This document shows, piece after piece, positions 9,896 through 60,886 of a DNA stretch of 64,000 nt; positions within the stretch are counted from its first letter, which is position 1; every line of letters starts with the position of its first letter. A model generated the notes under the pieces. The model was given only the letters and a program-made list of their open reading frames with translations. It ran no database searches and was not told where the DNA came from. Source of the DNA: Octopus sinensis (taxonomy: Eukaryota). The stretch covers positions 4,898,001 through 4,962,000 of the forward strand of contig NC_043014.1 in NCBI RefSeq assembly GCF_006345805.1. Direction: 5' to 3'. The translations under genes and the position numbers were made by a program.

Positions 9896-10392
9896 TCAAT
9901 ATTTACTGCAAACAACGCAGGTTAATTCTTGACCTTCGACATACGGTGGACATGGCAATGAACCACAAGAAGCCTGAACGAAATATAATAAAGCTCCATT
10001 TTCGTTTCGGTAACCCGCTGGATCAGCTTCTGGTGCATAATCCACACACACATATTCATGTCTGCCTTTATGATTATAATGCTCGGTCATCAAATATCCT
10101 GAATACTCAGCTATCCAACCATCGTAACACTTTGTCCTGGCTGGTATCATCATAACAACAGCAGGTTGTCGTGTCAAACAGACAGCGCACGGAACGTTGT
10201 GTTGATGAAGTGATTTAGCGTTAGCAAAAGAAAAGAGTTTATTTGAGTAGTGGGATATTTCATATTCACTGCCATAAATGTAACCACCTTTTTCAACTTC
10301 TGTTGTATAATTGGCCCAAATGGGATCGTTAGGTAAACACAAGAGATTACTTCCGCCACCTGTGTGGTCAAAGAATTGTCCACCAACCACAC
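9896..10392 (-). CDS. G1 exon 4: Cys-rich domain like the short-chain collagen C4-like C-terminal domain
   Basis: ttctag| acceptor, phase 1, 164 codons plus TGA. Motifs GGGSNLLCLP, PCAVC, IPARTKC..GW..EYSGYLM, YVCVD, CGSLPCPPY, ELTCVVCSK; N-glycosylation sequon NYT. Confidence 0.95.
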
Positions 10393-10660
10393 CTAGAATT
10401 GGTAAGAATAAATCAAGTAAAAAAGATGTTAACCAAAATTATATATAAAATAACTGAAACATTCATTACAATTTGACCCTTAAAAGATGTCATGTTTAGT
10501 CGCGTGTGAAGGAATTGTGGTGTATATATGTTAGTGTTTATGTGAGTGTAAGCTGTGTGTTGAGGTATGCATGAGATCATAGCTGTGCATTTGCATTCTC
10601 TTCATATATATATATATATATATATATATCGATGTTAGCAACAAGGATATCCAGAGATAA

Positions 10661-10747
10661 TGCAGTACGATTGTTTCATGCAACTCCATTTAATTGAACA
10701 ATACAATCATTACATCAATTTAAAATATAGAGCAATCTTCAGCTGCA
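10661..10747 (-). ncRNA. Type I hammerhead ribozyme fold (non-canonical U-U at base of stem II)
   Basis: TGCAG-CTGAAGA-long stem II-GAAA-C-AATC-G-TA-CTGCA; stem I TGCAG/CTGCA; GUA cleavage triplet. Confidence 0.65.
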
Positions 10748-11439
10748 CAAATACATAGGATTTAATTGAATTGAAACAGATTGACACATTAGTATAATTA
10801 TACCTAAAATCTCTAAGAAGCTAAGGAGATACACAAAGAACAGTTTGTCTCTACTTCAGCATAGAAGTTAATAAAATTATCAAGAAATTTATGAATACTT
10901 ATGAATAGAAAAAATATTCAACAATTTCTATCCTTTTTTTATAATATTCTTCTTAATAATCCTTTGGTAAACCCTAAACTTCAACTGTATTCTTAGCAAC
11001 ATTGTTTAAAATATTTAACTATAATATATGATAAGACATTCCGTTTCAATGTCAATAGTCTGCCAGTATGCGACCCCCTTAATTATCAGCTAACATCTTT
11101 TTTTAAGTTTTCCCTTACTAAACCTCATGGTATTGCTTATAATAATTCTTGATTTTTTTAATGACTATACCAACTAGAATGTCTGTCTCCCCACTAAGCC
11201 CTCCCTCTAACAGATACTGCCCTATGTTCTCTCAGCCTTAGATATACAAAGGATTTGTAAACAATTGAAACTGACCCAATAAAGACAAAAAAATCAGTGA
11301 CAAGCCGACCTTCATGATAATTTTAGTAACTGCTATGCTGAAGTAGAAACAACATGTTCTATGTAATTTCTTGGAGATTTTAAGTATAATTATACAAATG
11401 TGTCCATATGTTCTAATTTAATTTAATGCTACGTTTTTG

Positions 11440-11526
11440 TGCAACTGAAGATTGCTCTAAATTTTAAACTGATGTAATGATTGCATTGTACAATTAAATG
11501 GAGTTGCATGAAACGAACGTACTGCA
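11440..11526 (+). ncRNA. Type I hammerhead ribozyme fold, inverted partner (stem I has a core-proximal mismatch)
   Basis: TGCAA-CTGAAGA...GCAT-GAAA-C-GAAC-G-TA-CTGCA. Confidence 0.55.
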
Positions 11527-11645
11527 TTATCTCTGGATATCATCGTTGCTTAGTTTAATTTTAATCCCCTTACTTTGAAATTGTATGGATAATGCCGTAC
11601 TAAATTCTGGAGCCTCAACTTAAGTACCATATTCATCCGAATCTA

Positions 11646-57748: not shown

Positions 57749-57826
57749 GTGCGTGTACGTGTGCGTGTACGTGTGCGTGTACGTGTGCGTGTACGTGTGC
57801 GTGTACGTGTGCGTGTACGTGTGCGT
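57749..57826. repeat. Six perfect copies of the 12-mer GTGCGTGTACGT
   Basis: Direct reading; a single copy at the matching site in unit 1 (near 19160). Confidence 0.93.
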
Positions 57827-59558
57827 TCGTATGTGTGTGTGTAAGCGTATATGGGTGTATATACGTGTATCCGTGGGGTTGTGAGTTTAGAGTATGTGCA
57901 TTAATGTGCGTGTGTGCGTGCGAATGTGTGCGCATCTTTTTGCGGATAAGTATGTGTGTGCGTGTAGGCATATATTGTGTGTATGTATATGTATCGGTGT
58001 GTATGTGAATTTGTACATGCGTGTGTGTTTTGGGTTTTTCTGGAGTTGTGTGGGAGTAATGTGCGTGCGTGTGTGCGCTTACGTACGTGTATGTGCGTGT
58101 GTGTCTCTGCCCATGTGTGTTTAAGTGTGTGCGTATCTGTATGAGTATTGTTCGTTAAAGGTATATGTGGACATCTGTGCTGGTGTGTGTGTATGTACGT
58201 GTGTATGTATGTGTGTGTGTATTGTGTGCGTATGATGCATATATCTCCGTGATCACCGTCACAGACTAGTTGTTGCTACATATCGCTGGTCACAATGCGC
58301 TTCGCGTTGTTTTAGCCTTCAAATGACGCCACCCCGCTGGTTAAGCGAGCAGGCCAACAGAAGAAAGGGAGAAAGTTGTAGCGAAAGAGTACAGCAGAGA
58401 TCAACACAACCCAATTCCCTGAGCCTCGTGGAGCATTAAACACTCACAACGCCCAGTCTGGGAATCGAAACCGCGATCCGACAACCATGAGTCCGCTGCC
58501 CTAACCACTAGTCCACTGCGCCTCCACCCCCCCACCCCCACACATCACACATATATAAATACATATCAATATATAGGTATACACGTATACTTAGGCATAC
58601 ACACGATAAATATCACAAACATACGTATCTACTTATACGCATACACACACACAAACACACACATATATGTGAGTGGACATACACTGTATAGTGTGATTGT
58701 TCGTGTACAATTGAGCACGTGTGTCTGTGTGCGTGCGTATGTGTGTGTGTTTGTGTTTATTTGTGCGTGTGTTTGTCCGTGTGTCTGTGTGTATGTATTT
58801 ACATTCGTTCTTACATATTGTCATATATAAAAACCAACGTGAATTACAGTCAAACATTACGAAATTCACCGATCTACATTGGCACTCGCACGTTTTATTT
58901 TCAGTTGGAAAGAAAAGATTAAAAAAAACTCGCCTCACTTCCGTTCCTGATGGAGAGAAATAGATAAATGTGTGTAAATATGTACGTATTCCTATGTGTG
59001 CGTGTGTGTGTGTTTGTATGTGTCTGTTTCTGTGCGTGTGTGTAAGTGTACATCTAGATATAATACTTAACACTAATATTAATAGGGCTAAACGTTGCAG
59101 CGACAGGGCATGGCCATGCTAGAACCCCACCATTAGATTTTTTTCATTACGCACTTATTTCCCTCTCCAGGATAATGTCTGGTGAAAGAGCGATCGGACA
59201 GGAGTACAATTCCACACTTCTTTGTGTTTCTTTGGGATGTGTGTATATGTATGTATACATATATGCACACACACACACACACACACACACACACACACAC
59301 ACATACACACACACACACATATATATATATATATATATATATATAGAGAGAGAGAGAGAGAGAGATAGATAGATAGATCCATAAATAGATATGTATGTAT
59401 ATACATACGTAACAATACATGTGTGTATGTATATATGATATGTATATATATATATATGTATATATATATATATATATATATATACATATATATATATATA
59501 TATATATATAAGTGTGTGTGTGTGTGTGTGTGTGTGTGTGTGTGTGTGTGTTTGTGTG

Positions 59559-59835
59559 TGTGGAGGCACAATGGCCCAGTGTCCGTAGGACCACGTTTTC
59601 GATTCCCAGACCGAGCGTTGTGTGTGTTTATTGAGTGAAAAACACCTAAAGCCCCACGAGGCTCCGGCAGGGGTTGGTCGCGATCCCTGCTGTTCTCTTT
59701 CGCCACAACTTTCGCTCACTCTTTCTTCTCTTGACCTGCTCGCTTAGCCAGCGGAGCGGCGTCATTTGAAGACTAAAACAATGCGAAGCGCATTGTGACC
59801 AGCGATGTGTACTAACATCTGGTCGGTCACGGTGA
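59559..59835 (+). mobile_element. Family-1 SINE, inverted relative to 58245-58527
   Basis: Head tggaggcacaatggcccagt..ttcgattcccagacc; tail aatgcgaagcgcattgtgaccagcgatg. Confidence 0.8.
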
Positions 59836-60742
59836 TATATGAATATATAAATATATATATATATATATATATATATATTTAATCAATATAGGGTGGTGAA
59901 AAAAATTTTGTAGAATTCTTTTTGCCACCAGCGGCCTAGTGGGAAAAAATTAAATAGTCATAGACCATTTTTAAGTTCAACATCAACAATCAAGGAACGG
60001 CCATAATAGGCCATTCACCCACTAGAAATAACAGCCAAAGCTTCAACCGCAAATAAAGATCAATTCCGTAAACGGCCGTTCCTTGATTGTTGATATATAT
60101 ATATATATATATATATATATATAATTATAATAAGGGTTTTTAGCAACAAGTTGCTTAAACCACTTACCAGAAATATTAGAAATAGCAGTCAAAGGCCTAC
60201 CATTTCTATTACAACAATGGTAGAAATGGTAGCCCTTTGACTGCTATTTCTAATATTTTCGGTATGTGGTTTAAGCAACTTGTTGCAAAGAGCTCTTATT
60301 ATAATTATATATATTTTTACCGTATATGGTCCTTTTCCATACAGAAATACTACTAGGAGAAATTTATTGATTTTATTAAATGTACACGCACTAATATATT
60401 CATATATATGTATATTTATATATATATATATGTATATTATATATACAAATATATGTATATGTATATATATGTATATATATATATGTATGTTTAGGTGTGT
60501 GCGCCTGTGTGTTTTTCTGTGATTACGTGTGTGATGGATCGTACGAGTGTGTGTGCTCTATAGAAACATATGTACATGGTTCATGCATACATCCGTTCAT
60601 CCATCCATCCATCCGTAAGTAGATAAATACATATATTAATACTTACATACGTAGATGCATCCATGCATACATACATGCACGCATACATACATATATATAT
60701 ACATAAAGACATACATATGTTAACACAAAATCCATGACTTAC

Positions 60743-60886
60743 CGTTTTCGATTTCTCTTCCATTTTTCCTATTCTTGAATCTTGATGAAGAATCACGATC
60801 GTCAGAACGAGAAGAACCCCAAAAGCTATGAGAGAAGAAATGGAATAACGCTGCGAAATATTCCTGGACAGTTGTGCGAAATCCAT
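60743..60886 (-). CDS. G4 exon 1, intact; completes a 255-aa ORF
   Basis: 144 nt, |GTAAGT donor. Confidence 0.9.

Follow-up and report, generated by a model that had tools for sequence, protein, structure and literature searches.

A tandem array of octopus genes for spongin-type NC1 domains with a putative membrane anchor and variable loops

Background

The question raised by this stretch of the Octopus sinensis genome (64,000 nt of assembly GCF_006345805.1, contig NC_043014.1, positions 4,898,001-4,962,000; hereafter the window, numbered along the forward strand) is what is encoded, and to what end, by tandem genes whose copies share a cysteine framework and differ in a few short patches. 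A reading of the letters alone (from here on, the original prediction) had seen in them a family of collagen-free, membrane-anchored proteins with a diversifying ligand-binding face, behaving like innate-immune or allorecognition families. Our analysis indicates that the window would be a slice of a large octopod tandem array, in which copies would arise by duplication, decay and exchange with each other. Each unit would encode a single-pass protein with a short cytoplasmic N-terminal tail, a signal-anchor helix, a stalk and an extracellular, disulfide-rich, N-glycosylated domain, the membrane anchor standing where a collagen triple helix normally precedes the spongin-type NC1 domain. As to function, we consider it fairly probable that this array displays an NC1-like binding or oligomerisation module at the cell surface.

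Public annotation already gives octopus genes of this kind the name "short-chain collagen C4-like", and they belong to a known, very large domain family. Spongin-type NC1 domains are widespread in invertebrates and their function is poorly defined. The SSCC-related proteins of Aouacheria et al. 2006 are counted with this spongin-type group. The spongin short-chain collagens consist of a short collagen segment and an NC1-like domain, the latter with seven cysteines shared with collagen IV, three family-specific ones and no HSQ motif, and they occur in invertebrates except ecdysozoans and in basal chordates (PMC5395295). Our literature search found no description of the replacement of the collagenous part by an anchor, of a very large octopod array or of mosaicism of loop cassettes, and the only cephalopod account of the family that it returned was an ink proteome paper (PMC10142993).

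Gene structure and encoded protein

Self-comparison of the window revealed five tandem units of 10-17 kb (A, B, B', D and Z), which differ from one another by 4-12%. Only A and D are intact; B and B' are disabled and Z runs past the window edge. Exons 1-3 were found by tblastn with an annotated octopus relative, and the junctions were then inspected for splice sites. The gene obtained in this way lies on the minus strand and is composed of four exons of 144, 52, 75 and 497 nt, the last including the stop codon, separated by GT-AG introns in phases 0/1/1; exon 1 runs from the ATG to a GTAAGT donor. Canonical splicing of gene A (22610..9896) and of gene D (60886..49247) leaves in each case an open product of 255 aa, in agreement with the four-exon model of the original prediction.

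The 255-aa protein begins with a 14-aa N-terminal tail, followed by a hydrophobic segment at residues 15-33 (19-20 aa long, with a Kyte-Doolittle score of 2.67 in a window of 19), a stalk of about 37 aa that extends to approximately residue 70, and the Cys-rich domain. In A and D the domain has 10 Cys, one from exon 3 and nine from exon 4, and the NYT sequon is invariant; no Gly-X-Y run longer than 3 was found in the window proteins. The tail, the single hydrophobic segment, the stalk, the 10 Cys, the sequon and the absence of Gly-X-Y had all been anticipated, and the A and D translations confirm them. Likewise, the near-invariance claimed for exons 1-3 holds, the A and D proteins differing at 1 residue over exons 1-3 (90 aa) versus 24 over exon 4 (165 aa).

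Four exon-4 open reading frames (ORFs) of 164-165 codons were identified on the minus strand, and all eight peptides quoted in the original prediction were found there, including the QLDLYPT variant of gene B, which does contain an in-frame insertion, of one codon. The four copies that had been treated as a gene family are real, but only those of A and D belong to intact genes.

A spongin-type NC1 domain

A search with the exon-4 peptide returned 370 proteins, the top ones being named "short-chain collagen C4-like", with E-values (E) down to 1e-100. The best matches, at 75-91% identity, were from Octopus sinensis, O. vulgaris, O. bimaculoides and Argonauta, and the next ones, at 44-55%, from Capitella, Lineus, octocorals, bivalves, Owenia and Branchiostoma; the best 120 of the 370 relatives have E between 1e-39 and 1e-100 and represent at least seven phyla. 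At E<=1e-3 a profile of 59 members recovered 4,640 representative clusters, of which 1,355 remained at E<=1e-30. The 10 Cys are invariant or nearly so in an alignment of 61 sequences and fit the seven plus three described for spongins (PMC5395295), and no HSQ tripeptide is present in the products of gene A or gene D. On these sequence criteria we firmly assign the window domain to the spongin, or "short-chain collagen C4-like", NC1 domain, and the likeness to the C-terminal domain of the short-chain collagens, noted from the letters alone, is borne out by both the homologues and the Cys pattern.

The structure was modelled for the O. vulgaris paralog P0010, which is 88% identical overall to gene A; its part encoded by exons 1-3 is identical to that of gene D and differs from that of gene A only at R50S. 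The AlphaFold2 (AF2) model has a mean predicted local distance difference test score (pLDDT) of 84.6, mostly above 90 in the domain. When it was compared with the PDB by Foldseek, ranks 1-36 were all collagen IV NC1 domains (best E=1.7e-6, probability 0.95-1.0), 27 of them at E<=1e-3, with TM-scores of 0.40-0.44. An HHalign comparison between the family and seven PDB-verified NC1 sequences gave E=1.7e-4 and a probability of 49%, pairing C81/C109/C160/C163/C180/W184 with NC1 C20/C53/C108/C111/C130/W134, that is, five Cys and a conserved Trp. The strand and loop pattern repeats in the two halves of the modelled domain, and when these halves are aligned directly with each other the match is only marginal (E=0.06-0.11). 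The model thus predicts a two-lobed NC1 fold. Equating the Met of "YLM" with Met93 of collagen IV was found to be wrong, Met93 being located in the inter-lobe linker.

A putative anchor in place of the collagenous region

The architecture of the family was surveyed in 59 aligned relatives. Gly-X-Y runs of 5-20 are present in 14 of them, nine with a signal-peptide-like N-terminus, and 27 of the 59 are free of Gly-X-Y and have an internal hydrophobic segment that starts at residue 10 or later. This anchored group includes all the octopods, Argonauta, the nemertean Lineus (P0062), Branchiostoma (P0092) and several unnamed transcripts; no collagenous domain is present in the octopod members, in which Gly-X-Y runs reach 2-3 at most. 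When the exon-4 domain and the 59 relatives were scanned with Pfam, the sole match was Collagen, in 13 of the relatives. Since the anchored group spans Lineus, Branchiostoma and octopods, it is a recurrent variant of the family and not an octopus invention; the suggestion that these proteins may be lineage-specific therefore fails both for the domain, given the number of clusters reported above, and for the architecture, which Argonauta also shares.

In the P0010 model the anchor region is one helix spanning residues 16-55, and the hydrophobic segment looks more like a signal anchor than a cleavable signal peptide. The tail and the anchor are conserved between paralog subfamilies and from Octopus to Argonauta. 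From this conservation in octopods, from the length and position of the segment and from the disulfide-rich, sequon-bearing C-terminal domain we infer a type II topology (N-terminus inside, C-terminus outside). What had been proposed as a membrane-anchored type II protein stands as a collagen-free protein with an N-terminal signal-anchor-like segment, while its topology has the status of an inference.

As regards the stalk, dibasic or furin-like sites (LEKRS, LERRS, RFRRD, RHRRE, RQKRE) occur soon after the anchor in the distant anchored relatives P0030, P0032, P0035, P0038, P0044-P0046, P0054 and P0062, and the window subfamily has MEEKS there. Judging from these sequences, ectodomain shedding may be ancestral and may have been lost in the window subfamily. 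Seven family representatives (P0121-P0127) are 700-3,900 aa long with 3-9 domain copies each; they may be genuine multi-domain proteins, or else tandem genes of other genomes fused in the gene models, and hint that tandem arrays are common outside octopods.

Several known systems can be compared with these proteins. The spongin short-chain collagens ("short-chain collagen C4" of Ephydatia muelleri and the spongin-like proteins of Nematostella) have the same C-terminal 10-Cys domain without HSQ. Unlike them, the octopus proteins lack both the Gly-X-Y segment and a cleavable-looking signal peptide, in place of which there is a 19-20-aa anchor after the 14-aa tail, and their genes are arrayed over at least 600 kb and vary in their loop cassettes. 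The membrane-associated collagens XIII, XVII, XXIII and XXV are type II proteins with a short cytoplasmic tail, a signal anchor and a collagen-family ectodomain. Their ectodomains are long, collagenous and without an NC1-like globular domain, and the likeness to the octopus proteins is one of layout; the furin-like stalk sites of some distant relatives may be set beside them. The NC1 domain of collagen IV (PDB 1LI1, 1M3D, 5NAX, 8TYS; PF01413) has the two-lobed fold in common with the octopus model, whereas the octopus domain has 10 Cys instead of 12, no Pfam C4 match and no long triple helix. Finally, ctenophores have a stand-alone NC1 gene (Fidler et al. 2017, PMC5395295) that encodes, as in octopus, an NC1-type domain without a collagenous region, but that domain is of the collagen IV type with no anchor described, whereas the octopus one is spongin-type, anchored and tandem-expanded.

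Variable loops, divergence and cassette mosaicism

We aligned 15 intact exon-4 sequences, four from the window and 11 from other loci. High-entropy positions are grouped in four loops (P0010 numbering): P1 (96-100), P1b (122-128), P2 (136-141) and P3 (194-203), apart from a few variable single sites elsewhere. Precisely, 24 of the 25 high-entropy positions are in predicted loops, versus 80 of the 140 other positions (Fisher p=8e-5). The long strand of the first half-domain is followed by P1 and that of the second by P3, and P1b and P2 flank the strand between these two loops; in the model, P1 and P3 appear as pseudo-symmetric, equivalent hairpin loops of the two half-domains. The original prediction of variation clustered on a fixed Cys framework is supported by this distribution. 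Its list of three variable patches was correct as far as it went but missed P1b (TTEVEKGGYIY in gene A), and its description of them as aromatic/His patches is right for His, enriched 9-fold in the three patches (13.6% vs 1.5%), and not for aromatic residues, with Phe/Tyr/Trp at 13.0% vs 12.7%.

The ratio of nonsynonymous (dN) to synonymous (dS) divergence, omega, was estimated by the pairwise method of Nei and Gojobori (NG86) and by parsimony counts on neighbour-joining trees. The patch definitions were drawn from the window and applied out of sample to the other 11 paralogs. For the latter, NG86 omega reached 0.46 in the patches as against 0.26 in the framework, and for all 15 paralogs the two values were 0.49 and 0.27; the three patches ranged from 0.46 to 0.52 when pooled and from 0.35 to 0.66 when taken singly, values to be read with the caveat that local dS in the patches is inflated 3-fold. 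Parsimony counts gave 0.62-0.65 for the patches (0.52-0.75 for single ones) and 0.28 for the framework. In P1b omega was 0.95-1.32, which is not significant, and no region was significantly above 1. Hence the dN/dS above 1 that a diversifying face would show in the patches once more paralogs are included was not observed, the values of the three patches across the 15 paralogs all being below 1.

Even so, the patches are more divergent than their surroundings. Among codons whose amino acid is conserved, silent divergence comes to 0.51 for the patches versus 0.17 for the framework, and patch dN (0.37-0.48) exceeds framework dS (0.14-0.23). Between window copies, patch nucleotide divergence amounts to 20% for A-D and 45% for B-D, against 6.7-7.5% in the adjacent introns and 5.4% in the A-D 3' flank. 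Relaxed constraint cannot pass the neutral rate, and as the patches exceed the introns, and do so at silent sites too, relaxation alone is insufficient.

Loop cassettes recur in nucleotide-identical form and in different combinations among paralogs. For instance, GQFFDHT occurs with EISHYS in A, in B' and in one copy of an O. vulgaris locus (L004a), and with QLDLYPT in the L006 pseudogene; QLDLYPT is also found in B, L004b and L005a, joined to three other P1 and P3 variants. The four-gamete test is failed by 35% of the informative site pairs. By contrast, a block of about 600 bp that takes in the 5' flank and exon 1 reaches 95-100% identity between units, compared with about 91-92% for their introns. 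These patterns fit a putative frequent exchange of short tracts, by which paralogs would become homogenised in some segments while older loop variants are shuffled among them, and local hypermutation could also be a source of loop divergence. Patch divergence above that of the flanking introns, together with the shuffling of cassettes, implies that some diversifying process is real.

The array in other octopod loci

Seven loci around relatives were compared with the window, six from O. vulgaris (OX597833.1, 11.075-11.695 Mb) and one from O. sinensis. All of them contain the same four-exon units, in both orientations, with frameshifted (L005 and L006) and fragmentary (L004 and L007) exon-4 copies. 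None of the seven is the window itself, the top identity over stretches of at least 1 kb being about 96%. The protein encoded by exons 1-3 in the window is identical to that of the O. vulgaris models P0008, P0010, P0020 and P0033, except for R50S in gene A. Four-exon units with broken copies between 11.075 and 11.695 Mb imply an array of at least 600 kb under birth-and-death turnover, and from the unit size we estimate 35-50 genes in the octopod array. An assembly artefact was rejected because the units are 4-12% apart and comparable arrays are present in three other octopod assemblies. Public gene models for the array are often chimeric or truncated.

In apparent orthologues of O. vulgaris and O. 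bimaculoides (L007 26492-26977 vs P0026), P2 and P3 are exactly equal, P1 differs (QFFDQP vs QHYDQT) and so does P1b (ELE vs VVD), which indicates that loops can change independently between close species.

Proposed function and alternative explanations

In collagen IV, NC1 selects the partner chains and joins trimers head to head, and it governs how the networks of basement membranes are linked. By analogy, the octopus ectodomain would be an NC1-like binding or oligomerisation module with a partner specificity that varies with the loops of each paralog, the partner being either another NC1-like protein or an extrinsic ligand; a recognition function of the window proteins is on this analogy plausible. 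As the simplest mechanism, short-tract gene conversion or recombination among many paralogs would keep old loop variants, and the promoter/exon 1 block and the framework would be homogenised while the loops stay diverse. A stronger version seems to us very unlikely: the array of at least 600 kb would be a code for cell-surface identity or for the recognition of non-self, derived from the chain-selection domain of collagen IV, in which the four loops are combined from old cassettes by gene conversion and each paralog has its own homophilic or heterophilic specificity. With regard to expression, a peptide of a paralog (DDGGAVLYFVQSVCGSLPCPPYVK) was found in the O. vulgaris ink proteome (PMC10142993), and the spongin-like genes of Nematostella are mostly neuroglandular (PMC12549020).

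Several findings weigh against the surface-displayed module. Pfam C4 (PF01413) gave no match at E<=10 in the window domain or in the 59 relatives, and phmmer and profile hmmsearch against PDB sequences found no NC1 and only chance RING-finger or galectin matches, so that the link to collagen IV relies on the fold, on a moderate profile-profile score and on the literature; the Foldseek TM-scores are, moreover, modest. The Met93/Lys211 sulfilimine pair is not conserved in the HHalign register, where the Met93 position falls in LFSF and the KAGEL C-terminus has no Lys equivalent, at places that are of low confidence or outside the aligned block. Spongin NC1 models were reported without the domain-swapping hairpin of collagen IV trimers (Fidler et al., PMC5395295), and for both reasons NC1-style oligomerisation may not apply. 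In addition, patch omega is below 1, a PHI-like test for distance-dependent incompatibility within the 500-bp exon was not significant (p=0.21), and two of the four window exon-4 copies lie in disabled units, so that part of the variation may be decay. The sole expression datum, the ink peptide, belongs to a paralog and not to the window's own genes.

The same peptide agrees with the view that the proteins are structural or secreted matrix components (of mucus, ink, cuticle or the pericellular matrix), with a shed ectodomain, tolerant His-rich loops for metal binding or cross-linking, and copy number acting as dosage. We judge this view rather unlikely, although the family is defined by proteins of the sponge skeleton and extracellular matrix, cnidarian members are up-regulated in the adhesive pedal disc, His is enriched in the loops, and dibasic stalk sites of distant anchored members (LEKRS, RFRR, RQKR) suggest shedding. 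In fact, the window subfamily has lost the dibasic site (MEEKS), a tail and an anchor conserved across octopods would be unusual for a segment that is merely removed, and tolerance of the loops, being a form of relaxed constraint, cannot explain patches that exceed the adjacent introns 3-6-fold, at silent sites too. Diversifying innate-immune or allorecognition receptors, with loops under positive selection tracking pathogens or non-self, would instead account for dN in the loops above framework dS, for omega of about 1.0-1.3 in P1b, for hypervariability confined to loops with shuffled cassettes, and for a tandem array with birth-and-death turnover and pseudogenes. This role, proposed in the original prediction, is weakened by the 14-aa cytoplasmic tail, in which no signalling motif is recognisable, and by the origin of the only expression datum in ink; furthermore, omega is about 0.5-0.75 in the three patches over the 15 paralogs with no region significantly above 1, our literature search found no data on expression in haemocytes or upon challenge, and the products of relatives in other animals are described as matrix or neuroglandular. 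We therefore regard it as distinctly unlikely. As for a largely decaying array, in which most copies are pseudogenes or untranscribed and the patches are a by-product of conversion among dead and live copies, devoid of functional meaning, it would explain B (stop codon and frameshift), B' (exons 1-2 deleted), the frameshifted and fragmentary exon-4 copies of the other loci and the many faulty public models. However, 15 of about 19 sampled exon-4 copies keep the 165-codon frame open with all the Cys, framework omega (0.27-0.29) points to purifying selection, A, D and Z have the same exon 1, and one paralog was detected as protein; this explanation is, in our opinion, extremely improbable.

The surface-displayed module, which we favour, has parallels among expanded families. 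FREPs, VCBPs, bivalve C1q-domain proteins and the clustered protocadherins of octopus combine tandem expansion, a fixed framework with variable loops, pseudogenes and exchange among paralogs, and for these families binding has been shown experimentally. The octopus array resembles them in the pattern of expansion but not in the fold, which is unrelated, and its dN/dS is not above 1. Octopus is, besides, already known for expanded adhesion-gene families. The case presented here would be that of an NC1 relative freed from the collagen helix, tethered to the membrane, multiplied, and diversified in the loops through exchange of cassettes. Should the loops set specificity, an ancient matrix domain would be newly used as a surface recognition module, and swapping loops between naturally occurring paralogs would offer a tractable way to ask what a spongin-type NC1 binds; if they do not, the array still illustrates clearly how a tandem family can evolve as a mosaic. 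It also makes plain that the present octopus gene models of the cluster are often in error.

Features of the window

The positions of exons, loops and other features are listed in Table 1.

Table 1 Features of the five tandem units in the 64,000-nt window
Feature	Position	Strand	Remarks
Gene D exon 1	60743..60886	minus	ATG at 60886; N-terminal tail and hydrophobic anchor; 48 codons; phase 0 donor GTAAGT
Gene D exon 2	56082..56133	minus	52 nt, stalk
Gene D exon 3	51332..51406	minus	75 nt; start of NC1-like domain, SLYTRWGRTTC, first Cys
Gene D exon 4	49247..49743	minus	497 nt with stop; 9 Cys; GQWYDHT / EISHYS / SNHHGQKGRQE; gene intact
Gene B exon 1, disabled	44630..44772	minus	CAG>TAG at codon 12 (~44737-44739); 1-bp deletion in A-run near 44650
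Gene B exon 2	39369..39420	minus	
Gene B exon 3	36663..36737	minus	
Gene B exon 4	34411..34910	minus	open, one extra codon; GLHFNHP / QLDLYPT / SEYYNAKGRHD
B' 5'-flank copy	32098..32988	minus	from ~-49 relative to ATG, upward; joined directly to truncated exon 3
B' truncated exon 3	32031..32097	minus	without first ~7 nt and acceptor; junction at 5-bp microhomology TCTCG
B' exon 4	27121..27617	minus	open; region 96% identical to gene A; three patches as in A
Gene A exon 1	22467..22610	minus	
Gene A exon 2	17523..17574	minus	R50S vs other copies
Gene A exon 3	14734..14808	minus	
Gene A exon 4	9896..10392	minus	gene intact, 255 aa
Gene A loop P1 GQFFDHT	10361-10381	minus	
Gene A loop P1b TTEVEKGGYIY	10274-10306	minus	
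Gene A loop P2 EISHYS	10244-10261	minus	
Gene A loop P3 TEHYNHKGRHE	10055-10087	minus	
Unit Z exon 1	5713..5856	minus	coding sequence identical to A and D
Unit Z exon 2	848..899	minus	exons 3-4 beyond low end of window
Homogenised 5' flank and exon 1 block	22447..23045	minus	95-100% identity between units vs ~91-92% in introns; equivalents before exon 1 of B and D
Alternative-5'-exon homologues, unit B intron 2	38055-38138, 37248-37319		
Alternative-5'-exon homologues, unit A intron 2	16204-16293, 15429-15476		
Intron-3 insertion (~2.4 kb), A	11370-13750		
Intron-3 insertion (~2.4 kb), B'	28688-31050		
Intron-3 insertion ORFs, A	12210-12749, 12880-13290	minus	179 aa and 136 aa
Intron-1 block (~590 bp)	A 19955-20541, Z 2758-3345, B 42941-43531, D 58551-59139		
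Microsatellites upstream of exon 1	~6900-8070, 23500-25200, 45600-47400, 62100-63750		also in many other places

B' is 96-98% identical to A, of which it is a young copy, and it lost its exons 1-2 through a microhomology-mediated deletion. An insertion of about 2.4 kb is present in intron 3 of A and B' only, which implies that the insertion was already in A when B' was copied from it. The insertion, probably a transposable-element remnant, contains two ORFs conserved between A and B'. A GIY-YIG element was considered and dropped as unsupported, since Pfam gave no match for these ORFs or for the ORF across the conserved block of intron 1.

This block, of about 590 bp, is 96-98% identical between units, in introns that are otherwise about 85-92% identical, and the O. 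vulgaris loci L002-L006 have it at the corresponding position, 1.2-1.9 kb downstream of exon 1, at 91-98% identity. It matched no Rfam or Pfam family; a conserved regulatory element, an exon missing from the annotation and a hotspot of conversion are possible identities. An Rfam scan of the window at the gathering threshold found no RNA families.

Intron 2 contains, downstream of exon 2, homologues of 5' exons that are used alternatively in O. sinensis isoforms (MVTLNLDAKVSTF... and SLLDLLCCPETVN...). In public models, the MVTLNLDAKVSTF and SLLDLLCCPETVN exons are placed before the segment resembling exon 2, and one O. sinensis model spans 117 kb; the displacement suggests read-through or splicing between units, or chimeric gene models.

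Microsatellites of the CATA/TGTA/TGC type occupy 1-2 kb of the sequence upstream of every exon 1 and are found in many other places. These long arrays cause strong local GC and AT skews, and they yield dozens of spurious ORFs of 130-280 aa (MYVCMYVC..., HTYIHTYI...).

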